From contig NC_092374.1 of the NCBI RefSeq assembly GCF_030028105.1, forward strand, positions 194,117,345-194,181,344: 64,000 nucleotides of DNA. The letters run 5' to 3'. How positions within the stretch are numbered: position 1 is the first letter of the stretch; every line of letters starts with the position of its first letter. The translations under genes were made by a program, and so were the position numbers. The notes beneath the pieces were generated by a model. The model was not told the origin of the DNA, ran no database searches, and saw nothing but the letters and a program-made list of their open reading frames with translations. Source of the stretch: Mobula birostris (Eukaryota). Below are positions 32,996-54,537 of the stretch, piece by piece.

Positions 32996-34049
32996 GTTTG
33001 TGTGTGTATGTGTGGTTGTGTGTATGTCTGTGTGTTTCTGAATGAACGTGTATATTTGTGTGTAGGAGTGTGTGCACGACTGTGACCCACAGAATCACTC
33101 AGCACAGAGCTCCTTTGTTCCATCATATCTATAAAATAGCATTCTGTACTCAGCCCATTGACCAGCACGTGGTCTGCAACCTTCTCCCCCTTTACAGTTC
33201 ACACTCTATCGTACACGCTCGACTTGTCTAGTCTGTCCTCATAATATAACACAAGCCATATGAAGCCATCTAATCCAGCCAGAATCCCGGTAAAACTATT
33301 TTGCACCCTCTCCTCATCCTTCCTATAATCCTATAATCGGTGGTGCAGTGAGTTAGAGCTGCTTCTCGCTGGGCTGAGCACGGAGCGGGCGGTTTGCATG
33401 CATCAGCTCTTCACACCGCTACCGCAGCTGCTGAACGCTGAGCGACCAGTTTTACACGCGGCCGGAAACCGGACGCCGTGAGACAGGCAAGGGTGGGAGC
33501 GGGGTAAAGATCTAGTGCAAAGTTAGTTGGCATCTGAAACCTAGCCGGATTTATCGGCAGGGAGTAGTCATCTCGGACGCATGTGGGGTCTCGGATAATT
33601 TACCTGATAAAGAGCAAAGGTAGAATTAGAACTAAACTTTTATTAATTATTAGCTTTTCCGGGAGGGATCTGGGAGAATTTGTCTTCGACGATATAAAAG
33701 TTCTGTAATTTCCATTCTCTTGCGGATTGTGAACTGCATCGAATTGTGGAACCTTCCCTAATTCCCAATAAAACAGGAAATAGTGGGGGTCCATGGAATG
33801 GAAATTACTGTTAATGTTTACAGTTCTAAGATCCTTCAGGCAAAACGGAAACGTTAACATCTCGCTGTGACTCAGGGTAGAAATATTAATTGTTTCTCTT
33901 TTCGCAGATGGTGCGTGACCTGCTGAGTTTTTTAAAGCATTTTCTGTTTTTATTTCATATTTCCAAAATCTACAATATGCTATCTTAATTGTTTTATCTA
34001 TTCCGTCAAGAGGTGTGAACGACGCGATTCGTTTGTTGGCGGTTGTCCG

Positions 34050-34272
34050 GCGTACCAACAATCACAGGAGACCCGCGCGGGGTTTCTAACGTGGGAAAGT
34101 TAACAGGAACAGTTCCACACTCTTACCCTCGGATGTCCGGGTGCAGTGGTACGTGTAGTCGACACAAAGTGGGGTCTTCCTTGGTTGTAGTGGGTGACCA
34201 TGACCTCTTCCGTGCCTTGTCATGCCGTGCGCTGTCCACGGAGTGTTGCAGAACCGCCTTCCTGGCTGTTGG
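34050..34272 (+). pseudogene. Putative C1-set (MHC class II alpha2-like) exon remnant with frameshifts and an internal deletion
   Basis: Across frames: VPTIT..GKLT..HSYP/SDVRVQWY, SLVVVGDHDLFRAL, SCRA/HGVLQNRLPGCW; matches the C1 patterns YPxxIxVxW and CxVxHxxLxxxLxxxW. The B-strand Cys and splice sites are not preserved. Confidence 0.45.
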
Positions 34273-34371
34273 ATCTCACTGTTGATCACATCTGTCCAGT
34301 CCGGCGGAGGAGATCGACATTAATTCTGTTTCCCATTCAATAGATTTCCATTAGTTTCCTTCGTATCATAG

Positions 34372-34522
34372 GACGGGGATTTCCCTATCTCACTCGAGTA
34401 TGAGGTCCATTGGCTGTCTTCACCTGGTTTAGCCCGTTTGTGGAAGCGGTGTACCCGAGTGTGGCCGCTTTCGCATGCAGACAGGTACTTGGAGCTGAGC
34501 GTCTGGTGGAACCCAAGGGTAG
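34372..34522 (+). pseudogene. Possible connecting-peptide/TM/cytoplasmic exon of the MHC-like relic
   Basis: Acceptor gtttccttcgtatcatag|; phase-1 frame GRGFPYLTRV*GPLAVFTWFSPFVEAVYPSVAAFACRQVLGAERL..; donor AG|GTGAGT at 34522. Confidence 0.3.
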
Positions 34523-35402
34523 GTGAGTTGTCCCGGGAGAGGTCAAGCCGCTTCAGCAGAGGTGCTCTCCCTCCCTGGACAGCCCATTTCACCAACTATT
34601 ACCAACTGATAAGTTACCAATTATTTAACCTCTTCCGTTAAAGTGACACGTTGTTGTGGGGATTGAAGTCAAATACGAAATAATTTACATTAACTGAGAT
34701 ACGACAGTTTCGCAAGCTTTCGTTAACCATTTCGGTTTTCTACATTGAACCTTTGCCGCAATTGTTAGCGCTGTTTTCTCGCAGCTCCTGCGTCCGCGGT
34801 TTCGACCCCGATCTTTGGCGCAGTTTGTATGGGTGGAGTTTGCATATTCCGCCTGATTCCCTGCGGGTGCACCAGCCGTGTGGGCTCCCCCCACACCGCC
34901 GGGAGCTACGATTCATTCCGCGTCCCTACGACTTGTGGATTGGATCTGGGAATTGTCTCAAGCGTGGGAGCGAATTACGGGAGGAGTGGAAGGGAAGTGA
35001 GGGGAGAATGTGTAGCCCAGTCAGCACTGGAGTAGAGCCGGCGATCGGCGTGGGCTGAATTGCCTTCTTCGCGCGCTGCGCGGTGAGGGATATGAACGTG
35101 AAACTGTGTTTGGAATCTGTCAGTCCAAAAGGGAATCTTACCAAGAAGAGGACGTGGCTCATCGCTGAACGTCCCTAACGTCAGTGAAGCGCTTATTGTC
35201 ATGTTTCCCCCGCTCCTAATCTCTTTGTAACTCTCCTAGTGGTTTATCCAGCTCGTTCCAGTGATTCGGAAATCAACGGGAAAAATCCAGTGGACAGTAC
35301 TTCATCCCTCCCAATTTTCCAACAGGTTGCACGAGGAGGCTCGGTTGTAAGAAGGGAGAAGTAGCGAACACTAAATATCTCCTCTGTTTTAGTGGAGTAA
35401 CG

Positions 35403-35445
35403 ATGGAGGTGGGCGCCATTCTGTGGCTCCTGACAGTCTCCTCCG
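35403..35445 (+). CDS. NCR3: Leader exon [14 protein letters not shown](G)
   Basis: Strong Kozak context aacgATGG, hydrophobic peptide, donor G|gtaagt; upstream acceptor ctcctctgttttag at 35392. Confidence 0.85.
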
Positions 35446-38400
35446 GTAAGTAGCTTTCTGTTCCTTTATGGCTACAGCTTGGGGGAGAAGGCAATGTGCA
35501 GCGCGGGAAAAGCGGGAAGGTTCGTCTGCTTCATTTGCGTTCACGACCTACGGAGGCACTGTGGGCAGCTCGCGAGGGTCGTCACACATTCCGGCGCCAA
35601 CATTAATGTCCGCAATGTCGGCAGAACAACATAAAGCACAACAAAACGCAACAAAACAAGCTCCTTCCCTCCCTCCCACGCGCACACACGGACAGTCCAC
35701 CAATTCCGAGAACAACGTTCGGGCTTCTAGTCTCCGGGCTTCCGACATCGACCCCCTGACTAGCCGACTGGGGAAGGGGGAGCTGAATTCCAGGTCGAAC
35801 ACTGAGGACGCAGACTTCTCCTTTCTCCCTCCTTCCTTTCCAATCATGATGAAGGGTCTCAGCCCGAAACACAACTGGTTATTCCCCTCCACAACTGCTG
35901 CCTGACCTCCCGAGTTCGTCCTGTTACTCTGGATTTCCCGCATGTGCAGAATCTCTTGAGTGTGGGAGTTGGGAGGTTTTGTTACAGATGTACCAGTGAC
36001 CGTGAGGCCGCACTTGGATTATTCTGTAGAATTTTAGCCTCAGTGATTGTGGACTCCTAGCCCCGAAACAGGCCCTTCGGCCCAACTCGTCCTTGTCGAT
36101 CGTGTTAACCAGCGAACTCGTCCCATCTGCCCGCGTTTGGCCCACAGCTCCCTAAATCCCTCCGACCCATGTACTCATCTACAAGGCCTTAAGATATTTG
36201 TAGTTTACTCGCCGCCACCGCCATTTCTGTCAGCTCATTTCAGCCACGTAACACCATTTGTGTGAAGAAATTGTCTAATATCCCTTTCAAAACTCTCTCG
36301 TCTAATCTTAAACCCATGCTCTCTTGTTGATAACAACAACCCTCCCCCGGTGTAAAATGCTGCTTTCAGAATATCTATGCCCTTTATTGTGTTTCATACC
36401 CCTATCAGGTGACCCCCTCAATCTCCTACATTCCAGAGAATAAAGTACTAGTCTATGCAACCTCTCCTTGTAACTCAGGCCCCCAAATTCTGACGACATC
36501 CAGGTAAACCATATCTGCGCGCTTTCTAATTAATAACATCTGTAACAGGGTGGCCAGCTCTGTACAAAATATTCCAAGTGCAGCCTCACCAACGACTTGT
36601 ACAACAGAAACATAACTTCTGGACTCCTGTCCGCAAAGCTCTGACTGAAGTTCAGCGTACTGAACATTGTCTTCACTACCTGTCTGCCGCTTTCAATGAG
36701 CTGTGCACTCGTACTCCTAGGTTCCTCTTTTCCAGGCTCCGATCCGCACTTTCTCGGTAACTGTAACACTTCATTCCCCATTCTGCTGTTGTTCCTCCTT
36801 TACAATAACTCACTGAATCGATGTGATAAAATGATCTGTAAAATGATCAAACAAAACGTAGTTTTTCACTTTACCTCAGTACATTTACCATAATAAACAA
36901 ATTTACCAATTTTAAAGTTTGCTCTCTGCTTTCAGGCATTGGTGCTGAGAAGTTTGTGGTCATTCAGGACAAGTCCAGCATTGTTGCCACAGAAGGGGAG
37001 ACGGTGGTTATTCCATGCAGACACAATTTCACGAATAAAGTATGGTCCTACCAGTGGTTTAAAGGAGCCCAAAATGGAATAGAAGTGACCAATGAAACAG
37101 CAGAGTACAGAGGCCGCTTCTTCAGACCTCCAGGGGGTGATCCCACCACTAACAGCACAGATGTTTCCCTGCAACTGAAGGACGTGCGGCCGAGTGATTC
37201 TGGGATGTACTTCTGCAAGTTGGAGGCAATAAAATGGAAAATGTATGGGGCAGGGACGAATCTCGCAGTGAGAGGTAAGCCAATCATCAAGCATCTCCTT
37301 GTCTAAGCAAATCAGACCCACCACCCGAACAGAATTTGGTCAAGGCTGGAAAATGCTGGAGTTACTTAGCAGGTCAGTCAGCTACTGTGAGGAGAGATGC
37401 AGCAAAATGTTCAGATCTGTGACCAATCCTCAGGGAAGAGAAGGAGGGTAAACAAGAAGAAAGAAATATCTTGTAAACAATTTTTGCCTAGTGCTGAGGA
37501 AAGATCTTCCACTTCAAGCATTAACTCTGTTTCACTTCCCACAGATGCTACCTGACCTACTGAGCGTTTCCAGCATATCTAGTTGTTTTTTTTTTTACCA
37601 CAGATTTCCCGCATCTGCAGGTTTTAAATTTTCATTGTTAGAATTTCACACCCTGGATAATGATAAAATCGTTCCAGAACAGAAAATGTGGGAGAGGGGG
37701 TGAGTAGTAACAAATCAAACCTTCCCTCCAAGGACTCTGTCTTCTGATTTCTTGCTGCCTCAGTGAAGCATCCAACATAATGAAGGACCCCACCCACCCA
37801 GGACATTCTCTCGTCTCCCCTCTCCCATTGGGCAGAAGATACAAAAGCCTGAAACCACAAACTACCAGGCGCAAGGACAGCTTCTATCCCACTGTTATCA
37901 GACTATTAACTGGTTCCCTGGTATGATCAGATGGGCTCTTGACCTCATAATTTACCTCGTTACGGCATTGTCTCCCTACACTGCACTTTCTCTGTCACTG
38001 TTACACTTTACTCTGCTATTGATTTACCGAGTACTACCTCACTCAGCGCCATGTAATGATCTGATCTGAATGAACAGTATGCAAGACAAGTTTTTCACTG
38101 TACCTCAGATTATGGGACAATAATGAACTAATACCAATTCCAAAGAGGCTGTTGGTGCTGAAACCTGGAATGAACCAAACACAATGCTGGAGGAACTCGT
38201 AAGTCAGGCAGAATCTAGGGCGGGAGATTGAGAGTTGATCTTTCAAAAGGGGACACTCGGCCCATTCTGTCTGTACTGAGTCCATGCACCAACAATTACA
38301 CGCTTCAGCTTTTCTCCAGAGCCTGGCAAACACCTCCCAGTCAAATACCTCCCTGTTTGCTCTTGGACAGTAACATTATTCAAATGTATACACCGAGTAC

Positions 38401-41400
38401 GCTGTTAGTGGCAAGTTCCTTAACAGTACAAATGAGCAGAAGGATCTTGGAGTCCAAGTCCAAAGTTCCCTTGAAGGGGGCCAGATACGTTAATAGGATG
38501 GAAAAGAAGGCTTACGGCTTATTTTCCATAATTACTCAAAGAAATCAGTTCAAGAGTTGGGAAGTTGCATTGCAGCTTTACATAATTATTTAGTTTGCAT
38601 CTGGTATTGCATTCAGTTCTGTTCACCCGTTATAAGGAGGAGGGTGAGGTTTTGGAAAAGGAGCAGAAGAGGTTTACCAGCAGTCCGTCTGGTTTAGCGG
38701 GCAGGTGCTATAAGGGAAGGTTGGACAAATGTGGGTTGTTTTCTCTGGAGCAGCAAAAGCTGAGCAGAGACCTGGTAGAGGTTTATAATTTATAAGAGAC
38801 ACAGACAGAGCAGACAGTTGATATCATTTTCACAGGGAAAAGTGTCTAATACCAGAGTGAATGCATTTATAGTGAGAGGGGGTCTGTTCAAAGACGTGTG
38901 GGCAATTGTTTTACATGGAGAATGGCGGGTGCCTGGAATGCTCTGGTTGTGGTCGAGGTAGAGGCAGATACAATAGGGCATTGAACAGACTCTTAAACAG
39001 GCGCATGGATGTGCAGGAAATCAGGGATGCGGACATTTTGTTAGGAAGGGTTAGTCTAATTGGACATCTGGTCACCAATTAGTTTGTCACAACATTGTTT
39101 ACCGAAGGGCCCGTTACTGTACGGTATTGTCCAATGTTTTTAAAATAGCAATTGCTGAATTATCCAGTCCATAGCCCAATCACTTTGTTAAAATATTTCT
39201 GCTCACGTTTTACCACTTCATTCTTTCAAAGTTTCTACCCCCAATGCCAACTCCGGCTGATGGCAGGATCAGAACCGGAAACGACATCACTATCTGAATC
39301 GGGTTTAATATCACCGGCTGCCGTTTTAACAGTCGAAGATTATTAAATAGTATTCGTTCTTCTCCATCGAAAGAATTTGAATGTGTTGCTTCTCTTGATG
39401 CGGAGACAGCCCTTGATAGGGTGGAGTGGTCTTACTTATTTGAGGCTTTGGGAAGATGTCATCTTGGCCCGGGATTTATTTCCTGGATTAATTTGATCTA
39501 TCATGCTCCTATAGCTGCGGTTATAACTAATAATAAAAAAGATCTCCCTATTTTAGATTATACAGAGATACACAGCGGGGATGTCGTCTTAGCCCTTTAT
39601 TATTTAACTTGGCTTTAGAACCCCTTGCTATTGCTCTTACAGATTCTAACACTGTTCAGGGTATTAAAAGAGTGGACAAAATACACAAGGTTTCTTTATA
39701 TGCACATGTCCTGTTAGTTTATACTTCAGATCCTAGGAAATCTGTTCCTTCTATGTTATCTATATTTTCTGAATTCAGTAGTTTTACTGAGTATAAATTA
39801 GATTTACATAAAGGTGAGTTACTTCCTATTTATAATTACTCGGATCCAAATCATCAAGTACCTTTTAGTATTGCTAAAAATTAATTTATCTATCTCTGTA
39901 TTAAAATTACTAAAATATTGAGGATCTCTATAAATATATTTTTTCCATTAATTGACTACACCGAACAAATCTTTCTAAATGGTCTCCTATGACATTATCA
40001 TTAATAGGTAGAATTAATGATAATAAAATGATAGTTTTACCGAAACTCTTATATATTTCAAGCAGTTCCTTCCTTTGTTCCTAAAAAGTTTTTTGATAGA
40101 ATAGAGTATAACATAATATAATAACCTTATCTTATATTGGGAACAATAAAAATCCTAGTTTTTAGGATGGCCAAGTGGTTAAGGCGTTCGTCTAGTTATC
40201 TGAAGGTCGCTAGGTCGAGCACTGGCTGAGGCAACATGTTGTATCCTTGAGCAAGGCACTTAAATACATTTTGCTCTGCGACGACACAGGTGCCAAGCTG
40301 TATGGGTCCCAATGCCCTTCCCTTGGACAACATCGGTTCCGTGGAGAGGGAATGCTTGCAGCATGAGCAAATGCAGGTCTTCCATACAACCTTGCCCAGG
40401 CCTGCACCCTGGAAACTTTCCAAGGTGCAAATCGATTGTCTCATGAGACTAACGGAACCCTGTAAAATAAAAATCCTAGATTGAGCAAACCCTGTTTGCA
40501 GAAATTAAAAAAGGATGGTGGTATAGTTTTGCCAAATTTTAGAATGAACTTTTGGGCAATTAATATTGGGTATATTACTTTTTGGATTCACTATTCAGGT
40601 ACACATGAATGTCCTTCATGGTTGGATTTGGAGGAAAACTCGGTGAAAGGATTCTCTTTGACCTCTTTACTGGGAGCTCCTCTTCCCTTTTTGTTTTCTA
40701 AGATTAGTAGACAAGATTTTAATCCCATTAATAAACATATGTTAAGAATTTGGTTTCAGTTTCGTAGATTTTTGAGTTAAATAATTTTATCCTTTCTGGT
40801 AATATCCATCTCAATATTTTTTAAACTATCAATTTTGGATAAGGCTTTTTTAAATTTGGAAACCAAGGGAATAATAACTTTTTCAGATTTGTTTTTAGAG
40901 GACTGTTTAAGGTCTTTTTCTCAGTTCGTGGATGAATGTGATTTATCTGATGTACACTTTTTTAGATATTTACAAATTAGGAACTTTTTACGAGGTTTGT
41001 TGCCATATTTGTTGCTTATCCACCTCATATGACAAATGCTCTCTTTCAGTTTAAACCATTTCAAAAAGGGTTGATAGCTATAATCTATAAACCGTTATTG
41101 AACTCACGAATGACATCTAATGATAAAATTAAATGCGCTTGGGAATCGGAATTTCAAGAGTCATTTTCAGATAATCAATGGAGTAAAACTTTTCATTTGG
41201 TTAATAACTCATCTATTGGTGCCCGATATTCCTTGATACAGCTCAAAGTAGTGCATCAGGCCCATATGTCAAAGGATAAACGCGCGTATTTTCTCCAATA
41301 TCAATCCTATTTGTGACAGATGTAATACTGAGCTGCCCATTGTAACTCACATGTATTGGTCTTGTATCAAGCTAGATAACTTTTGGAGAGAAGTTTTTAA

Positions 41401-44400
41401 AATGCTATCAAAAGTTTTGGATCTGGATCTACAACCTCATTTGCTAGTGGCAGTTTTTGGGATTATCCCACTGGAAGCAGGAAGTATTCCTGTTTACGCT
41501 CAACGTATGATAGCCTTTTCGAACCTTACTGACTTGGAGAGTCATTTTATTGAAGTGGCAGGATTCTAATCCACCGACAGTCTTTTATTGGCTCTCCTCC
41601 ATTATGTCCTGTTTAAGTTTAGTGAAAATAAGAAATCGGACATTTGATACATCCTTTAAACTTGAGCAAATCTGGGGACCTTTTATCCAATATTTTCATT
41701 TAATTTGATTTATTACTCTTTCAATCTTTTTTCAAAATTTTAGATTTGATCAGAAAGTCTTTCTTTCTTTTTGGTCGTATCCTCAAAATGGACTGCTCAG
41801 TCCCTTTTTTTTTTGTTTTTTTTAACATAGTGTAGTGGGATTTTTTTCCTCTTCATTTAAAACTCAATGTTTTTTTTCTTTTCTCTTCATAAACTGATAA
41901 GGGGAGAATTGCTATTTTCATTTTTTTATTATATATTTTATACTAGTTTAACAATATCTATAAATTTGAAAATGTCTATCTTAATCTCGGTTGGACTGTT
42001 ACTGATATATATATTTGAGATAATTCTCCACTTGATTGTATTTTTACTCCTTTTAAATCTATAAAAAGATTACTAAAGAAAGAAAGATTCTCATAACATT
42101 GCCCTTTTGACACATCTTTTGTATCTCCTGCTGTAATTTGTAATCCACATCCCGGGTGCTGTTTTTGGAGGCCTGTATACAACTGACATTAGGGACGTTT
42201 TACCCTTGCCGTTTCTTAACTCAACCCATAGAGACTGTACACCTTGCAATTCTGTGTCATCTCTTTCCAATGACTTAATGTTATTTCTTATACACAGAGC
42301 CACATCACCCCCTCTGCCTACTAAACTATCTTTCCAATATACCGTACATCCTTGGACGTTAAGCTCCCAATGGCAGCCATCCTTTAGCCAAGTTTCAGAG
42401 ATGGCCATAACGTCATATTTGCTGATCTGTCACTGAATTTCAAGATCGTCCATTTTATTACCTATGCTGTGTGCATTAAAATACAACACAATCAACCTTG
42501 CATGTTATTCTCTGCCTGCATTGCACTTTCCCTGTAACTGTAACACTTTATTATCCATTCTGCTATTGTTCCTCCTTTGCACGAACTGATTGAATTGATG
42601 TGATGAAATAATCTGTATGGATGGCAGACAAAACGTAGTTTTTCACTGTACCTCAGTACATGTGACCATAATAAACCAATTTACCCATTTTAAAGTTTGC
42701 TCCCTGCTTTCAGGCATTGGTGCTGAGAAGTTTGTGGTCATTCAGGACAAGTCCAGCATTGTTGCCACAGAAGGGGAGACGGTGGTTATTCCATGCAGAC
42801 ACAATGTCACGAATAAGATATGGTCGCACCACTGGGTCAAGGGAGCCCAAAATGGAACAGAAGTGACCAATGAAACAGCAGAGTACAGAGGCCGCTTCTT
42901 GAGACCTCAAGGGGATGATCCCTCCACTAACAGCTCAGATGTTTCCCTGCAACTGAAGCACGTGCGGCTGAGTGATTCTGCGATGTACTTCTGCAAGTTA
43001 GAGTCTAAGGAATGGGAAATATATGGGGCGGGGACGAATCTCACAGTGAGAGGTAAGTCAGCCTTCAAGTATCTCCTTGTAAGTGCGAATCAGACACACC
43101 ACACAAACAGAATCTGGTCATGGCTGGTCAAGGCCGAACGTGCGCTGTTTTCCCTGGAGAGGCAGAAACTGATCAGAGACCTAGACCATAGAACATAGAC
43201 CCTACAGCACTTTACAGGCCCTTCAGTCCACAATGTTGTGCCGACCATGTAACCTATTCTAGAAACTGCCTAGAATTTCCCTACCACATAGCCCTCTATT
43301 TTCTAAGCTCCCTGTATCTAAGAGTCCCTTATCTGTTTTTACTACCATCACTGGCAGTGCGTGCCACACATCCACCACTCTCTGTGTGAAAAACTTACCT
43401 CTCACAACCCCCATTACCTGCTTCCAAGCACCTTAAAACTGTGCCCTCTCATGATAGCCACTTCAGCCCTGGGAAAACGCCTTTGACTATCCACACGATC
43501 AAAGCCTCTCATCATCTCATACCCCTCTGTCAGGTCACGTCTCATCCTCCATCCCTCCAAGCAGAAAAGGCCACGTTCACTCACCTATTCTCATAAGGTA
43601 CACTCTACAATCCAGGCAACATCCTTGTAAATCTCCTCTGCACACTCTCTATGTTATCCACATCCTTCCTGAACTGAGCACAGTACCCCAAGTGGGGTCT
43701 GGCCAATGTCTAATACTGCAGTTGCAACATTACCTCACACTCTTGAACTCAATCCATGGTTGTTGAAGACCATCACACCATACACCTTCTTAACAACACC
43801 ATCAACCTGCGCAGCAGCTTTGAGTGTCCTTTCGATCTCTGTGATCCGGCATACTGCCAAGAGTCTTACCATTAATTTCATATTCTGTCTTCAAATTTGA
43901 CCTACCAAAATGAACCACTTCACACTTATCTCGGTTGAAATCCATTTGCCATTTCTCAGCCAGTTCTGTATCCTATCAATGTCCCATTGTAATTTCTGAC
44001 AACCCTCCAGACTATTCACAACACCTTCAGCTTTTGTGTCAAAAGCAAACGTACAAAATTACATTTCTACTTCCTAATTCAGGTCATTTATAAAACTCTC
44101 AAAGAGGAGGAGGGTCCCAGAACAGATCCCTGCAGAACACCACATCATTGACCTACATGTAGAATACAAACCATCTACACCCCTGACCTTCTGTAGGCAA
44201 GCCAATTCTGAATCCACAATGCAAAGTCTCCCTGGATCCCATGTTGTCTTAATTTCTGAAAGAGCCTTGCATGGGAAACCTTATCAACTGCCTTACTGAA
44301 ATCCATATGCAGTGCATCCACTACTCTCCGATCATCGATGTATTTTGTTACATCCACAAAGAACTCAATCAGGCTTGTAAGGCATGACCTGCCCTTGACA

Positions 44401-47400
44401 AAGCCATACTGACTATCCCTAATCAGATTGTCTCTCCAAATGCTCATAAATCCTGCCTCTCAGAATCTTCTCCAACAACCTGCCCACCACTGAAGTTAGA
44501 GTCACTGGTCTATAATTTCCTGTGTTATCTTTACTCCTTTTCTTGAACAGGGGAACAACATTTGCAACCCTCTCATCCTCTAGTGCTTCGCTAATCCATA
44601 TTACTGATGCAAAGATCATCAACAGAGGCTCAGCAATCTCCTTCCTTACTGTCCACAGTAGCCTGGTGTGTATTTCGTCTGGTCCCAGAGACATATCTAA
44701 CTTAATACTTTTCAAAATCTCCAGCACACCCTTTTCCTTAGGGTCTATATGCTCAAGTGGTTCAGTCTGCTGTACGTCATCCCTACAATTGCCAAGTTTC
44801 TTTCCTCTGGTGAATACTGAAGCAAAGCTTACATTAAGTATCTCCGCTTCTGCCTCCGACACCATGCACATCTTTCCACTTTTGTACCTGATTGGTCCTA
44901 TTCTCACACGGCTCATCCTCTTGCTCTTCACATACTTGTAAAATGCCTTGGGATTTTCCTTAATCCTTCTTACTAAGGCCTTCTCGTGGCTCCTTCTAGC
45001 TCTCCTAATTTCATTCTTAAGCTCCTTCCTAGCCACCTTGTAATTTTCTAGAGCTCGAACAGTACCAAGTTTCTTGAACCTCTCGTAAACTTTTCTTTCC
45101 TTCTTAACTATGTGTTTAGTGGCGGGATGAGGGAGATGTCCTCCTTTTTTTTAAGAAAGGGGCTTCCCTTCCTCCACCATCAACTCTGCTCTCAAATGCA
45201 TCTCCCCCATTTCACGCACATCTGCTCTCACTCCATATTCCCGCCACCCCACTAGGAATAGGGTTCCCCTTGTCCTCACCTACCACCACACCAGCCTCCG
45301 GGTCCAGCATATTATTCTCTGTAACTTCCGCCACCTCCAACGGGATCCCACCACCACTAAGCACATCTTTTCCTCTCCCGCTCTCTCTGCTTTCCACAGG
45401 GATCGCTCCCAACGCGACTCCCTTGTCCATTCATCCACCCCCCCCCCCGCTGCCATCCCTCCCCACTGATCTCCCTCCTGGCACTTATCCTTGTAAGCGG
45501 AACTAGTGTTACACATGCCCTTACACTTCCTCCCTTACCACCATTCAGGGCCCCAGACAGTCCTTCCAGGTGAGGCAACACTTCACCTGTGAGTCGGGTG
45601 GGGTGATATACTACGTCCAGTGCTCTCGATGTGGCCTTCTATATATTGGCAAGACCCGACACAGACTGTGAGATCGTTTCACTGAACACCTACGCTCTGC
45701 CCACCAGAGAAAGCAGGATCTCCCAGTGGCCACACATTTTAATTCCACGTCCCATTCCCGTTCTGATATGTCTATTCACGACCTCCTCTACTGTATAGAT
45801 GAAGCTACACTCAGGTTGGAGGAACGACACCTTATATTCCGTCTGGGTAGCCTCCAACCTGATGGCATGAACATTGACTTCTCAAACTTCTGCTAATGCC
45901 CCACTTCCCCCTCGTACCCCATCCGTTATTTATTTATATACACACATTCTTTCTCTCTCTCTCCTTTTTCTCCCTCTGTCCCTCTCAATATACCCCTTGT
46001 CCATCCTCTGGTTCGCCCCCCCCCGCTTCTTTCTCCCTAGGCCTCTTGTCCCATGATCCTCTCATATCTCTTTTGCCAATCACCTGTCCAGCTCTTGGCT
46101 CCATCCCTCCCCCTCCTGTCTTCTCCTATCATTTTGGATCTCCTCCTCCCCCTCCCACTTTCAAATCTCTTAGTAGTTCTTCTTCCAGTTAGTCCTGATG
46201 AAGGGTCTCGGCCCGAAACGTCGACTGTACCTCTTCCTAGAGATGCTGCCTGGCCTGCTGCGTTCACCAGCAACTTTGATGTGTGTTGCTCCAGCTCCAT
46301 CATGTAGTCTTTCATGAGCTGGAGTTGGCTGCACCTCCCACAGTTGTAGACATCAGGGAGACGATCAGGTTCCATGAATTGCCACATCCTGAAAGAGCTG
46401 CATTCCACTGCCACATTTGCCATCCTGCCTGCACTGTACTATGGGCAGCCAAGACCAAATCAGCAATAACGAAAGGGAAAAAAAACTCCCCTTGCTACCT
46501 GTTTCATTGGCCTCAGCCGTTTCTTGTTCAAAGATGGCCACTTCGCTGGACCCGATCTCTCTTTTATGGTTTAAAAATAAGAAAAATCCCCACACAAGGA
46601 GAAGGAACTCATCACGTTTGGTGGTGCACTGCCTGCCTTCAGCTGCTGCCGATGCCTTTGACCTGATAGAGGTTTATAGTTTATTAGAGACACAGACAGA
46701 GCACACAATTGATATCATTGTCACAGGGGAAAAATGTCCATTTCCAGAGGGCATGAATTTAATGTGAGAGGGCGTATGTTCAAAGGAGAAGTGTGGGCAA
46801 GTGTTTTTCACAGACAGATGCAATCAGGCATTCAACAGGCTTTTAAACAGGCACATGGATGTGCAGGAAATGAAGGATACGGACATTATGTTGGGAAGGG
46901 TTAGTTTAATTGGACATCTGGTCACCAATTAGTTTGGCACAACATTGTTTACTGAAGGGCCCGTTCCTGTACAGTACTGTCGAATGTATTTGAAATAGTA
47001 ACTACTGAACTGTCCAGTCCACAGCCCAATCACACTCTTTGTTAAAATATTTCTGCTCACGTTTTACCACCTCATTATTCCAAAGTTTCTACCCCCAATG
47101 CCAACTCTGACTGATGGCAGGATCCGAACCAGAAACAGAATCAGTAACAGAATCGGGTTTAATATCACCGGCATATGTTGTGAAATTTGTTTACTTAAGC
47201 TGCAATACAATGCAATACATGATAATGTAGAAAAAGTAATAGATAAGCAGATCAATTACAGTAAGTATAAATGTATATTAAATACTTAATTTAATAATCC
47301 TGCAAAAACAGAAATAATTTAAAAAATCTGAGGTGGTGTTCATGGGTTCAAAATCCCTTGAGAAATCAGATGGCAGAGGGAAGAAGCTGTTCCTGAACCG

Positions 47401-50400
47401 CTGAGTGTGTGAGCCTTGAGGCTTCTGTGCTTCCTTCCCAATGGTAACAATGAGAAGAGGGCATGTCTTGGGTGATGGGGGTCCTTAATGATGGACGCCA
47501 CCTTTCGGAGGCACCATTGCTTGAAGATGTCTTAGATACTGCGGAGGCTGGTACCCAAGATGAAGGTGACTAATTTTACAGATATCTGTAGCTTCTTCTG
47601 ATGCTGTGCAGTAGCACACCTCCCCACCCCCTACCCATACCAGACTTGACGCAGCCTGTCAAAATGCTCCCCATGGTACATCCATAGAAGTTTTCAAGTG
47701 TTTTAGGTAACAAAACAGATCCCCTTAAATTCCTAATAAAATACAGTTGCTGTCTTGCCTTCTTTATCACTGCATCAATATGTTGCTGCCAGGTTAGATC
47801 CCCAGAGATATTGACAGCCAGGAACTTGACATTGCTCACTCTCTCCACTTCTGATCCCGGCATACGGATTGGCTCGTGTTTCCTCATTTTACCCTTTCTC
47901 AAGTCTGCCAGATTACCTACCATGTGGGGCGATTCTATCCCCCTCCTTGGCTCTTGAACTGGGGCAGCTACATTCAGAGGGGCCTCGAAGTGTTGAGCGG
48001 TAAATTCCCGGTTTGAGATCATCCATTTCTCTCCTTGAAGGATGCCGGCAGGATATTTGGGCAAGTTGTTGCTTCCATGGTGACTGACACAAACTCACTC
48101 AAGCTCGTATGGATGATGTTCCCCATTCTCAGTTGCTACCCACTTCATTTCCATTCCAAATTTCTACACCAAAACATCTATCCCCAGTCTCCTCACTGTC
48201 AGGGTCAGCTCAAACGCAAGCTAGAAGAACATCATCTTCTACTTCCCCCTGGGTTGTCCACAAGCTGACAGTGTGAACTTTGAATTCGTCAACCTCCTGC
48301 AAACTGCTCCCCCTCTGACCCTTTTCCCCTCCTCCTGATCTACTCCGTTATCCCTACAAACAAAAGACGACAAACTGCAGAGTAACGAAACCTTCCATAA
48401 CACACAATGATGAAGCATGTTAGGATGAGGATGAAAATGAAGTCAGGTTTAATATCACTGGCAGATGTCATGAAATGTGTTTTTTTACAGCTGCAGCAAT
48501 GTATAATAATAAAATCTATAAATTACAATATAAATAAAACTTTATGCAACTTTTTCCCATCCTGTGCTGTGGCCGCTCGATGCCAGGCAGTAATGCAATC
48601 AGTTAGTACATCTGTAGAAATCTGCAAATCTGCAGATGACATACCAAATCTCCAAAAACTTTTAATGCAATATAGCCTATGTTGTACCTTCTTTGTAATT
48701 CGATCAACATCCTGGGTCCAGGATAGATCCACAGGGATGGTGACACGCACGAACTTGAAACTTCTCACCCTTTCCACCTCTGATGAGGACTGGGGTGTGT
48801 TCCCTTGACTTCCCCTTCATGAAATGGTCTTATTGATATTAAATTCAAGGTTGTTGTTGCAACATCACTCAACCAGCTGGTCTTTCTCACTCCTGTACAC
48901 CTCCTCATCACCATCTAAAATTTTACCAAGAATAATTATGACGACAGCCAATTTATGAATGGCATTTGAGCTGTGCCTAGCCACACAATCGCCAGTGTAG
49001 AGAGAGTAGAGCAGTGGGCTAAGCATGCATCCTTGAGGTACACCAGTGTTGATCGTCAGTGAGGTGGTGATATTATTTCCAACCCGCACAGACTCTGGTC
49101 TCCCAGTGAGGATGGCAAGAATAGAGTTGCAGAGGGAAAGTCAGGAGCACAGGTTATGGGACGTGTTTGGATGCACAGTAGAGAGCATCCTAACATGCTG
49201 GATTGCTGTGTGGTACAGAAACTCACAGTGATGGATAGGATGACTCTACAACATGTAGTTAAAATAAGACCATAAGATATAGGTGCAGAATTAGTCCAAC
49301 TGGCCTAATTTGGAAGAGTCTGTTCCATCATTTCATCATGTCTGATCCATTTTCCTCTCAACCCCAATCACCTGCTTTCTATCTGTGTCCTTTCATGCCC
49401 TGACCAGTCAAGAAACTCTGCCTCAAATATACATAAACACTTGGCCTCCACAGCTGTCTGTGGCAACAAAGCCCAGAGATTAACCACTCAATGGCTAAAG
49501 AAACTGCTCCTCATCTCCTTTCTAAAAGGACGCCCCTCTTTTTCGAGGCTGTGTCCTCATAGGAACATCCTCCCCACATTCACTCTATCAAGGCCTTTCA
49601 CTATTCAATAGGTTTCAATGAGGTCACACCTTGTTCTGAATTCCAGCGAATACAGACCCAGATCCAGAGCCATCAAACACTCTTCATATGACAAGCCAAT
49701 GAACAGCTTGTCATATGTGTCCTTCAAAATGCAAAACACAACCTCGGTATTGGCCTATCCACCATCAAAGATCAGAATCAAAATCAGATACTTCCCCCAA
49801 TGTTATCAGGTTGATCAACACCTCCACCATTAACCCACCCCACCACCACTACATCCACATCAGCCACTCCTCTCCACAGCCCTCAGCACCCTTCCCATGC
49901 ACTGTCACTTTACAGTTACCTGTACATTGTGTTTTATAGGATTAGTTAAAAGTTAAAGTCTGAGCCTTTGTTGCCCAGCGGGCCGGTGCTTATGCCAGTT
50001 TCGGCGGCGTGAAGCGACTGAGAGTATCTGACTACCCTGTGGATTGGATGCCAGTCTATCGTGAGGTTAACCCCCAGCATTTTGCCAGTACCCATTTTCA
50101 GCTGGGGGTGGACTGGAGCAGTATGTGGTAATGTGCCTTGCTGAAAGACACAACACGCTGCCTTGACCGAAACTCGAACTCACGACCTTCAGATCATGAA
50201 CCCAACGCCCTAACCACTTGGCCACGCGCCACACATTTTACAGGATGGGTGTATATTTATACACTATAGTTTTTTGTTTTTATGCTTATTGTCTCTTTTT
50301 AATGCTGCATCAGAACTGGAGAAACAATGATTTCATCTTCCTTTAAACTCTTGTACTGACGATTGACAACAAACAATCTCAAATGTTGAATGTTTCCAGT

Positions 50401-53400
50401 CTTTAACACTGGGCCTTAATTCTCACCCCAATGGCCAACTTCCAAATGGGAAGCATTGACTTTCTCCTTTCCCATTTCAGGAAAAAGCAAGAGCTTCACG
50501 GTTACGCAAGGCCAGTCCAGTATATTTGTACGTGAGGGTGAAACGGACCTCATGATCTGTAGCGCAAATGCCAATCACTCCGGAGACATTGTGTTCTACA
50601 GCTGGTACAGCAAAGCATCTGAAGCTTCCAACGGGACGGCAGAGTATGCAGGGCGCGTCCTTGGGCCTGACCAGGAGGATTCCTTCAAAGCTTCCATGAA
50701 GCGGATGGATGTGAAGGAGTGTGATACCGCAATGTACTACTGCAAAGTACGGATAGACGGGATTGGCGAGGAAATCGGAGAAGGAGTATGGCTGACAGTC
50801 AGTCACACACGTGAGTCGTTCCCCAGCCCAAGACAATACTGAGCTTATTACCACCCACCAACACACACCCTTCCCCATCAACTTTCTATTCATGAGCCCT
50901 GTCTGCTTTCCAACCTTCACTTCCAGTGTCATCACCAACAGGACTGGCTGACCATTGCTGAATGTAGATGGGAGACTAAAGATAACAACAATTACATTGG
51001 GGTGACTGGCTAGAGATCACACACTTATCAACCAATGAACAATGATTGGCTCACTGTGCAGATTATAGAAGAGTGGCAAAGGCTCACACACAATCCTCCC
51101 TCACACTGGTACCCAGTATGGCAGTGGGTCACACATTGTCCTCTTCCCTCTGGGATTGGGTGGGGCAGTGAGTTACAAGATGTTCTCTGCCCCTCTTGGT
51201 TGAGGTGAAGCAGTCAGTCACACACTACTCTCTTCCCCCTCTGGGACTTGTTGGGGCAGTGGGTTACACTCTGTCCAACCCCACTCTGGGACCCGGAAGG
51301 GTAGTGGGTTACACACTGTCCTATCCTATTCTCAATGGATTCTTCCTGTGATGGTGTGGCCAATCCCCACCTCCGGTTGCTCGGGTTTTCTCCCACACCC
51401 CAAGGATGTGTGGGTCAGTGGTTTAATTGATTGCTGTAAATTGCCCCCAGTGTGTTGGGAAGTGGAAAAAGTTGGATGGATTTGAAGAGAAGGTGGGGAG
51501 GATCAGTTATCAGTAAAATTAATAAGAAAATGTAAATGGGATTAGTGTAGGACTTATTAATGTTAGACGAAGATCAACGTTCAATGTGACTTTATTACCT
51601 TTTGGTCATCCTATACAATTATTGGAAGAGCAACTTCCCTGTGCTTCCTGCCTTGGAATTGGGAGGAGGGGGTGTGGCAGGGACAGGAACGATCTCACCA
51701 GTGGGGTTAAACACTTTCAGGTCAGCTGCCATATCATTGCATGCTTCACCAGTCTCGAAGGGCCAAATGGCCCATTTGTGCTCGTGTGTTCTGAGTTGTT
51801 TTCTCCCCCACAGGCAAACTGAAACCTGTCACAATTCTCCTGGTGATACTGTTGACGGTCTTTGGAATACAAGGGAGCATCCTACTCGTCAGCATCCTGT
51901 TTCTTCGAAAACTACGCAGAGCAGAAAGTAAGGAGACTGAATTCTTTACCTCCATGGCCAGTTTAGGATCATCAGACACATAAGGATTTGGCCATTCGGC
52001 CCAACGAATTTACTCCATCATTCCACATTGAGGGATTTTTTTCCTCTCAACACCATTCTCCTGCCTTCCTCCATAACCTTAGAAACCAATACTGAACCTA
52101 TCAACTTGTGTTTTAAATATACACAATGATTTGGCCTCCACATTCATCTGTGGCAATGAATCTTCTGCTACAGAAACTCCTCATAATCTCCTATTCTGAG
52201 CGCTGCCCTCAGGTCCAAGACTCTCTCAATATTGGAAATATTGTCACCACATACACTCTGTTTAGGCCTTTCAGTATTTGATAGATGTCAAAGATCCCTC
52301 CCCACCATTCTTCTCAACTCCAGCGAGTACGGCCCAGAGCTAGCAATCCTCATACATTAACTCTTTCATTCCCAAATCAGTTTTGTTATTCTCCTCTGGA
52401 TCCTCTCCAATGCCAGCACATTGGTTCCTAGATATGGAGACCAAAACGGCACATAACACTGCCAATGTTCTTTGACGATGCCTTATATCCTTAAAGGTGA
52501 GGAATATTTGGAAAGCCCAGGGGGTTCACCAGCATGTGCAGATAAGCAGGGCAACTGAGGTAGTAGATCTGTGAGTCAGCAGCACAGACACAGGCCCTTC
52601 AGCCCAACTCATCTCTGCTGACTGAGATGGCCCATAAGTCTTTGGTCATGATGATGTGAGCTGTGGTATTTCTTGAGATCATGGCCCAGACTAAGTTGTG
52701 CTTTTAAGTTTGTAGGGATGGTTTTCAGGACAGTGAATGGAGTTGGGGGTCAGATTAGGGTGTATAGACATAGACAGGGATGTGAAGGAGGTAGAGGTCA
52801 GGACTCCACTCTGCACCCAGTGATGTGGATAGTTGAGAAGATGCACTCCGAGTCCAGGACTCTGCTCCACGCTCGAAATCCAGCGATACTGTCATGGCAA
52901 CGAAGTACATTCAGAGTTTAGGCCTCTGCTCTGTGCACAAAGGTTAGTAATGTGGGTGAAAATGTCCATGAAGGACACCCATGAATTCCGGACTGTCTCG
53001 AGTTGGTGGGTCCCAGTATTGAACATCAGTGCGATCCAGAGGCACGAGGCCCAGTCAGTCGGCCCCTAATGGTAATTGTGCCCAATTCTGCAGATTTCTC
53101 TGATGACTGGGCTGGATAAATTTATTGTCAGACGCTCCAAGATGCGATGAAATCCCTTCCCTGTTTGAAGCTCACTGGTGTACGTGGTAATATTAAATAC
53201 AACAACAGATACAGCCATGAGGACAAGACAACAGACTGGTGCAAGGAGAGCAGTGCAACGCATCGTAGTGCAAAAAGAAATGCTCACCAGGGACAGGGAG
53301 GGCAGAATAGTGGGGTGGCACGGTGACATTGTGGTTCCTGGAACACTGTCACAGTGCCAGCGAAGGAGAAGTCTTGCCCACAGAGGGGGTTCAGAATTTG

Positions 53401-54524
53401 CTTGCCTGTAGAAGGCAGAGGGTAGTTGTAGATGGAGCCTATTCTGCCTGGAGGATGGCGAACTGCGGTGCTCTGTACTGCTCTGTTCTGGGACCGCCGC
53501 TCTTTGTGATTTTTAGAAATGATTCAGATGTAGAAGTGGGAGGGCGTGTTAGTAAGCTTGTAGATAACATGAAGTTTGTGGAGTTGTGGATAGTGTGAAA
53601 TGGTGGCAAGGATTACAACAGGCCATTGATAGGATGCAGAGCTGGGCTGAGAATGGCACGTGGAATTCTATCCTGAAAAGTGGGAAGTGATTCACTTCGG
53701 AAGCTTTAATTTGAAGGCAGAATACAGGGTGAATGGCAGAATCTCTAGCAATGTGGAGGAATAGAGGGACCCTGGAGCCCACATCCATAGATCCCTCAAA
53801 GTTGCCTGCAGGTTGATTGAGCCGTGAAAAAGGCGTATGGTGTATTGGCCTTCACTAATTGGGAGATGAGTTCAAGAACCGTGAAGTAATGTTGCAGCTC
53901 TATAAAACCCTGGTTAGACCACAATTTTGAATTGAGCTGAGGTCTCATCACATCAAGTACAGTTTTGTGTGTTAATAAGATGGCAAATGTATCTGTTACT
54001 CTGGATTTCCAGCATCTGTGGAATCTCTTGTGGATCTCTTTTATATTCCTTCCCCAGATGTTAGGTGAGACGAGAAATGAAGGTCATTGGTTTAGGGTGA
54101 AAGGTGAAATATTTAAGGGGAACTTCTTCACTCATGGATGGTGTGAGTATGCAACGAGCTTCCAGTGGGAAGTGCTGGATGTGGGTTCAATTGCAACATT
54201 TAAGAGAAATTTGGATCAGTACATGGATGGGAGGGGCATTGAGAGTTCAGTTCCAGGTGCGGGTCAATGGGACTTGACAAAAAACAGGTCAGCACAAAGG
54301 GCCTGTTTCTGTGCTGTCATATCCAATGTCAATGGGTCACCTATGTAAGATTGAAGGGACTGTAGAAGTTCTGAGACTAATGTTTAGGCTGTAGGAGAGC
54401 CATGGGTAACGAGAGTGAAACTAGGGCTCCCATGGACAGTGAGTGGGTGGGACCTGCCAGTGTTTGTACTAATATGCACATAATTAATTTTACAGCTGAT
54501 TTAACTTCAACCTATTTGGATTGA
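35403..54524 (+). CDS. NCR3: NKp30/NCR3-family receptor with three VJ-type Ig domains (join 35403-35445, 36936-37274, 42714-43052, 50481-50810, 51814-51927, 54496-54524; 397 aa if all exons are included)
   Basis: All introns GT-AG and phase 1; open frame from ATG to TGA; the V domains carry the NKp30 signature (human EVRNGTPEFRGRL vs [13 protein letters not shown] and [13 protein letters not shown]). Family member; one-to-one orthology not established. Confidence 0.85.
36936..37274 (+). CDS. NCR3: V1 exon, VJ-type Ig domain (339 nt)
   Basis: [49 protein letters not shown]; ttcag| and |gtaagc. Confidence 0.95.
39340..42085 (+). mobile_element. 5'-truncated L1-clade LINE in the V1-V2 intron
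   Basis: [28 protein letters not shown]; LEPLAIAL; KVSLYA; C-terminal Cys/His remnant; A-rich tail. Confidence 0.85.
40159..40464 (+). mobile_element. tRNA-derived SINE nested in the L1
   Basis: A-box-like tggccaagtgg and B-box-like ggtcgag; TSD aataaaaatcctag on both sides. Confidence 0.75.
42714..43052 (+). CDS. NCR3: V2 exon, VJ-type Ig domain (339 nt), duplicate of V1
   Basis: 28 nt differences from V1; ttcag| and |gtaagt; flanking introns are homologous to V1's. Confidence 0.93.
43190..45110 (-). mobile_element. CR1 LINE ORF2 fragment with 3' tail
   Basis: [33 protein letters not shown]; [28 protein letters not shown]. Confidence 0.85.
45130..46290 (+). mobile_element. Penelope-like element 3' part (GIY-YIG), sense to the receptor gene
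   Basis: Same family as 9483-10937; contains ..[34 protein letters not shown]. Confidence 0.85.
46186..46227 (+). ncRNA. Minimal hammerhead ribozyme motif with an intact core, in the V2-V3 intron
   Basis: cagttagtc-CTGATGA-agggtctcggccc-GAAA-cgtc-gactg: stem I agtc/gact, stem II ggg/ccc, palindromic acgt. Confidence 0.65.
49955..50235 (-). mobile_element. tRNA-derived SINE
   Basis: Reverse complement begins gtggcgcgtggccaagtggttagggcg..gagttcgag; core similar to the 40159 copy. Confidence 0.7.
50481..50810 (+). CDS. NCR3: V3 exon, membrane-proximal VJ-type Ig domain (330 nt)
   Basis: [52 protein letters not shown]; tttcag| and |gtgagt. Confidence 0.92.
51814..51927 (+). CDS. NCR3: Transmembrane exon [38 protein letters not shown]
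   Basis: Acceptor ttttctcccccacag|, donor |gtaagg, phase 1-1; ~25-residue hydrophobic run followed by a basic stop-transfer sequence. Confidence 0.88.
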
Positions 54525-54537
54525 AGAACCCAGGATG
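54496..54537 (+). CDS. NCR3: 42-nt cytoplasmic exon TDLTSTYLD* (TGA at 54522-54524)
   Basis: Acceptor taattaattttacag|, donor gatg|gtaagt; the other two frames stop within 3 codons. Confidence 0.7.

Follow-up and report, generated by a model that had tools for sequence, protein, structure and literature searches.

A stretch of 64,000 nucleotides (nt) from the manta ray Mobula birostris (contig NC_092374.1 of assembly GCF_030028105.1, forward strand, positions 194,117,345 to 194,181,344; hereafter the window, in which all coordinates are given) carries a gene with one leader (L) exon, three exons for variable (V) domains of VJ type, a transmembrane (TM) exon and a tail micro-exon. It is probably a single gene of the elasmobranch NCR3 family that was enlarged by tandem V-exon duplication and is expressed, by default, as an mRNA in the order L-V1-V2-V3-TM-tail. 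The gene is real and transcribed, and on its sequence it is assigned as a three-V member of the elasmobranch NCR3/NKp30 family in the broad sense.

NKp30 is unique among natural-killer receptors in being traceable across jawed vertebrates, and its VJ domain has been discussed as a relative of the domain ancestral to antibodies and T-cell receptors (PMC12227049, PMC10751288). In the same papers NCR3/NKp30 is mentioned only as a single, non-rearranging VJ gene linked to the major histocompatibility complex (MHC). No description of a three-V architecture was found in the surveyed literature, which did not extend to Kinlein et al. 2021. The ray family presented here combines in-phase VJ exons of two types, numbering from 1 to 5, which were freely multiplied and stacked through exon duplication and without rearrangement.

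Exon organization

All exons of the gene lie on the forward strand. The leader exon (35403-35445, 43 nt) encodes 14 residues plus one base, ends in phase 1 and is followed by a GTAAGT donor. The V1 exon (36936-37274, 339 nt) and the V2 exon (42714-43052, 339 nt), a duplicate of V1, encode VJ-type V-set domains of a tip type, with Pfam V-set E-values of 2.8e-12 and 2.7e-12, respectively. The V3 exon (50481-50810, 330 nt) encodes a divergent VJ-type domain of a membrane-proximal type (Pfam V-set, E 1.4e-7). The TM exon (51814-51927, 114 nt) shares the 1-1 phase of the V exons, and the tail micro-exon (54496-54537, 42 nt) has an in-frame stop codon at 54522-54524.

As read directly from the sequence, the acceptors of the V exons consist of a pyrimidine tract and AG, and their donors of GTAAG or GTGAG. 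The canonical Cys, Trp and Y-x-C positions and a J-like G-x-G-x-x-L-x-V end are kept in V1, V2 and V3; the J-like end reads YGAGTNLTV in V2 and IGEGVWLTV in V3. Each V domain lies with its J-like end within one open exon, without a heptamer-nonamer break. A search of the 64-kb window by tblastn with V1, V2 and V3 found no further V exon, and no C1-set exon was found between V3 and TM, all three domains being V-set.

These results agree with an earlier interpretation of this DNA, the sequence-only reading, which had described one leader feeding three VJ-type exons of phase 1-1 with lengths of 339, 339 and 330 nt. Its statement that V1 and V2 share a GIGAEKF start was confirmed by reading and alignment, as (G)IGAEKF opens both exons. 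The absence of a second leader between V1 and V2 also stood: neither a short-word blastn search with the leader region nor a scan between V1 and V3 for ATG-started, hydrophobic, phase-1 mini-exons gave one, and the known leader was the sole leader-like exon detected from 33000 to 50480. As that reading had noted, exon phases permit in-frame skipping, with every V exon in phase 1-1 and a multiple of three in length.

The three-domain form probably arose when a phase 1-1 V exon was duplicated in tandem and in frame, together with its intron flanks. This placed two tip-type domains, V1 and V2, ahead of an older and distinct membrane-proximal V3. The predicted product is a type I membrane glycoprotein with three tandem germline-joined VJ domains, an uncharged TM helix and a tail of 16 residues. 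V1, V2 and V3 would stand together in one mRNA molecule, most likely with all three V exons included by default, and V1 would form the putative ligand-binding tip.

Family assignment

Among the top matches of V1 are nurse shark NCR3 (P0038/QTT61898, E 9.1e-14; P0138/QTT61904, E 3.0e-8) and the lungfish NCR3-like proteins P0072 and P0073. Among solved structures, V3 is best matched by human NKp30 (E 1.2e-5), and V1 by SIRP-alpha (E 2.6e-9), with NKp30 (E 5e-8) also ranking high for V1 once antibodies are set aside. Nurse shark NCR3, lungfish NCR3-like and human NKp30 are thus the nearest relatives that carry a name, and the proposal that the gene belongs to the NKp30/NCR3 family and has a single leader ahead of three germline-joined VJ-type domains was borne out.

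Like mammalian NKp30 (PDB 3NOI, 3PV6, 9FWW), the manta gene encodes a type I membrane protein with a germline-joined VJ-type V domain in one phase 1-1 exon, an N-G-T-x-E-[YF]-x-G-R stretch and a J-like motif. It differs in having three V domains where NKp30 has one, an uncharged TM segment, and a tail that the stop in the micro-exon cuts short. The strict mammalian definition of NKp30, with a single V and a basic TM residue, was therefore rejected as a description of this gene. SIRP-alpha and SIRP-beta, from which the automatic names of related models derive, share the VJ-type V domain. SIRPs have one V and two C1-set domains, whereas the manta gene has three V-set domains and no C domain; membership of the SIRP family was rejected, as all domains are V-set and no C1-set exon lies between V3 and TM.

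Nurse shark NCR3 falls in the same domain tree as the manta domains. Both of the nurse shark entries, with 213 and 170 residues, have only one V domain, whereas the manta gene is three-V, with a V3 type that forms a ray-only clade. Kinlein et al. 2021 (Immunogenetics 73:333) reportedly describe nurse shark NCR3 as part of an elasmobranch family of diverse, non-rearranging VJ receptors. The closest systems in layout are automatic ray and shark models (P0155, P0157, P0003, P0158), which have the same order of leader, V, V, V and TM; they differ in being unnamed or misnamed predictions without a published description, and in the tail, which has 82 residues in P0155.

In the domain tree, the V1/V2-type domains of rays form one batoid clade of nine rows (support 100/100). 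Within this clade, domain 2 of P0155, the three-domain model of Mobula hypostoma, is the sister of manta V2 (100/88). A three-row node with support of only 88/52 unites manta V1 with the first domains of P0155 and P0002. The tree identifies V1 and V2, on sequence similarity, as orthologues of domains 1 and 2 of the M. hypostoma three-domain model. Because of this pairing, the split between V1 and V2 predates the divergence of the two Mobula species. The V3-type domains, including domain 3 of P0155, form a separate, long-branched, ray-only clade (100/100), and in the predicted proteins they are always adjacent to the membrane. All three manta domains nest among elasmobranch NCR3-family domains in this tree, which was rooted on lungfish NCR3-like domains and held no SIRP, immunoglobulin (Ig), T-cell receptor or UrIg outgroup.

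An AlphaFold model of the P0155 ectodomain has three beta-sandwich domains at low confidence (pLDDT 66, pTM 0.43), and Foldseek with this model returned generic multi-Ig chains only. Its inter-domain geometry is untrustworthy, and the model therefore gives no conclusion on domain pairing.

Domain layouts in related species

A protein search with V1 against 1.84 billion representative proteins returned multi-V proteins as its best matches. The NCBI partial model for M. birostris itself (P0158, 'SIRP-like, partial') is identical to leader-V1-V2 and the first 25 residues of V3. Because P0158 reads leader-V1-V2-V3, the three-V join is already in public automatic annotation. P0155 of M. hypostoma (LOC134346461, 467 residues) has the layout L-V1-V2-V3-TM-tail, and P0157 of Hemitrygon akajei has L-V1-V2-V3-TM with a short tail, and in the orthologue models from all three ray species (P0158, P0155, P0157) V1, V2 and V3 are joined in series. 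Judged from these models, the three-V layout appears to be conserved in related rays and stands in public annotation, though misnamed.

Comparison of domain counts in other chondrichthyan models, which the sequence-only reading had proposed as a check, gave three V domains in rays and in horn shark, with paralogues of one, two and five. P0002 of M. hypostoma and P0156 of Hypanus sabinus have the layout L-V-V3-TM with a long tail containing tyrosine motifs. P0001 of M. hypostoma (XP_062903898) combines one V2-like domain with four V3-like domains that hardly differ from each other, and has no TM. This model looks suspect, and represents either a genuine five-V member that is secreted or a chimera predicted from a tandem array. 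The manta leader peptide opens P0158, P0002 and P0156, and also occurs within P0001 and P0157. Single-V matches include nurse shark NCR3 (QTT61898, QTT61904) and lungfish NCR3-like proteins.

In sharks, three V domains are predicted in the model P0003 ('turtle homolog B-like') of the horn shark Heterodontus francisci and two in the catshark model P0004. The tripling in horn shark was probably independent, because its triple sits in the shark branch of the tree. The horn shark gene has three annotated isoforms, all with three V domains and differing only in the tail, and isoforms X2 and X4 of white shark each have a single V. Variety in domain number thus appears, from the annotated models, to lie between paralogous genes and not between isoforms. 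The layouts of the ray family appear to follow a simple grammar in which tip-type domains (A) come before V3-type domains (B) next to the membrane, for example A-B, A-A-B and A-B-B-B-B.

Transcript evidence

The RNA evidence consists of public contigs from two runs of the same species (here X1 and X2) that are at least 99% alike to the genomic sequence. The joint 50810 to 51814 between V3 and TM (GT..AG) is present in contigs of both runs, and contigs of both also pass from 51927 directly into 54496 and onward, which joins TM to the tail. One RNA contig continues for 71 nt after the TM exon and so overshoots the micro-exon at 54496-54537 by 29 nt.

In run X2, V1 is represented by a contig at 36935-37105 (depth 4.5) and V2 by a contig at 42778-42900 (depth 4.3), with a fraction of 0.61 of the sampled V2 words found. 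V3-TM has a depth of 5.5-6.8, and bins of unique intron sequence are at zero in X2. V1 and V2 are therefore part of mature RNA, with a depth close to that of V3-TM. When contigs were placed on V1-V2 at 90% likeness, repeats swamped the placement around the V1-V2 joint. No loose contig end was found at the V3 acceptor.

A further contig of X1 (50782-50876) crosses the V3 donor into the intron at a depth of 5.5, equal to that of the spliced form. Translation through the donor would stop at 50842. Read-through of this donor could give a secreted three-V form, or the contig may be plain unspliced RNA.

Transmembrane segment and tail

The TM helix of mammalian NKp30 contains an Arg for pairing with an adaptor, CD3-zeta or FcR-gamma. 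No charged residue was found in the manta TM helix. The product of the TM exon is 89% identical to the TM segment of M. hypostoma P0002.

The tail micro-exon reads TDLTSTYLD-stop-RTQD(G), and its stop limits the tail to 16 residues. Its counterparts in the alignment are ADLTSPQLDEGPGTAQDG in Hypanus P0156 and ADLPSPQLEEGPETAEDG in P0002 of M. hypostoma. Phase 1-1 and a GTAAGT donor are retained, and the exon is shorter by three codons than that of the relatives. A low-stringency tblastn search with the tails of the relatives gave noise except for an ADLTS match, which led to the homology of the micro-exon. Because the micro-exon is homologous to these tails, the manta gene has an in-frame TGA stop within a conserved tail exon. 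Two micro-exons that precede the tail exon in the relatives are skipped in manta RNA. Among the three-V orthologues, the tail of M. hypostoma P0155 is without the tyrosine motifs of P0002, and that of H. akajei P0157 is short.

Duplication and divergence of V1 and V2

Self-blastn and alignment identified a duplicated block with V1 and its intron flanks at 36746-37349 and with V2 and its flanks at 42523-43127, both on the forward strand and 88.6% identical. A second collinear pair (38769-39318 and 46660-47172) is 79% identical. Because this second pair exists, the duplication took in intron on both sides, including the downstream intron; the arrangement of the copies indicates that the duplicated region was afterwards broken up by repeats. 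V1 and V2 are now separated by a repeat-rich intron of 5.4 kb.

The V1 and V2 domains are 82% identical in amino acid sequence, with 28 nucleotide and 20 residue differences. The initial 92 nt are identical in V1 (36936-37027) and V2 (42714-42805), yet the intron directly upstream has six differences in 90 nt, which points to recent gene conversion or very strong constraint. The same 5' stretches differ at several residues between the domains of M. hypostoma P0155. The 5' identity suggests that this tract underwent gene conversion recently on the lineage of the manta. For the codons after the identical part, the ratio of nonsynonymous to synonymous substitution rates (dN/dS) is about 0.75. Positive selection between V1 and V2 was considered and rejected, as this ratio gives no sign of it.

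The segment of about 190 nt upstream of the V1 and V2 acceptors (36746-36935 and 42523-42713) has a third copy, 69% alike, at 37967-38145 in the V1-V2 intron. RNA contig depth over this acceptor-flanking segment reaches hundreds to thousands. Because of this very deep coverage, the segment is taken as a high-copy repeat resembling a short interspersed nuclear element, whose end lies no more than about 40 nt from the acceptor. Fragmentary frames for an endonuclease/reverse transcriptase of the long interspersed nuclear element type lie on the reverse strand in the V1-V2 intron (42091-42408) and the V2-V3 intron (44175-45036 and 47576-48064).

Alternative interpretations

Several observations weigh against one intact gene with a default three-V mRNA. 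Contigs across the L-V1, V1-V2 and V2-V3 junctions were not recovered from the fragmentary contigs of X1 and X2, and linkage of the V exons within one mRNA is therefore indirect. Run X1 has V3-TM-tail and no contigs or words of V1 or V2. The models for other species are automatic predictions that may depend on one another and, within tandem clusters, may be chimeric. The in-frame stop in the conserved tail micro-exon could be a sign of gene decay. The pattern in X1 would be expected under the model of the sequence-only reading, in which V exons serve as exchangeable cassettes that alternative splicing joins to the one leader as L-V1-V3, L-V2-V3, L-V3 and L-V1-V2-V3, so that the tip or the length changes without rearrangement. 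Any subset of V exons would remain in frame, and L-V2 would be processed like L-V1 because the same 5' segment would complete the signal peptide in either case. However, X1 is also without the 5' half of V3, and its gap therefore resembles thin, 3'-biased coverage and not skipping. No L-V2, L-V3 or V1-V3 skipping junction was recovered among the fragmentary contigs of X1 and X2, the splice sites are all strong and alike, the orthologous models all keep V1-V2-V3, and shark isoforms differ only in their tails. We consider the cassette model unlikely and, even if it were true, it would give a handful of forms and no repertoire. Similarly doubtful is a functional proposal with two versions: either VJ cassettes would give tips and lengths that vary between cells, or tandem tips would pair in the manner of an antibody variable fragment, within or across chains, to form a composite site, putatively in an MHC-adjacent setting.

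It is very improbable that V1 and V2 belong to separate transcription units, or that one of them is a dead duplicate, with the leader of V2 lost or hidden. The repeat-rich intron between them and the models P0001 and P0002 of M. hypostoma, which both begin with the same leader and continue with a V2-like and a V1-like domain, respectively, would fit such an arrangement. Nevertheless, no leader-like exon was found between V1 and V2, and V2 is intact, with canonical residues, strong splice sites and a depth in mature RNA like that of V1; in the tree it is closest to domain 2 of P0155, rather than to the domain that heads P0001. Somewhat less remote, and still improbable, is a decaying locus, in which the premature tail stop and the two skipped upstream micro-exons mark a loss of function and the transcripts are at a low level and possibly degraded. 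The TGA lies in frame within a homologous micro-exon that keeps its phase and donor, RNA depth is low at about 5, and the M. hypostoma orthologue has likewise no P0002-type tyrosine motifs in its tail. Against decay, the leader, the three V exons and the TM exon are all intact, dN/dS between V1 and V2 is not 1, and the 5' third of these exons is perfectly conserved. The model of H. akajei is also short-tailed, and the combination of three V domains with a short tail may thus be one that is maintained.

Neighbouring gene

With regard to MHC linkage, open frames of at least 75 residues between 27830 and 34522 contained nothing recognizable on inspection by eye, no similarity search being run on them. 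At 934-972 the window encodes AKRSLQPEETTNQ, which matches the C-terminus of P0002 from M. hypostoma with 92% identity. This segment is assigned, from that likeness, as the last coding exon of an upstream neighbour, a predicted two-domain, long-tailed NKp30-like gene. With its truncated tail, the three-V product may be a non-signalling or partner-dependent counterpart of this two-V neighbour with its long tail and tyrosine motifs. Long-tailed and truncated-tail genes side by side give a hint of paired receptors.

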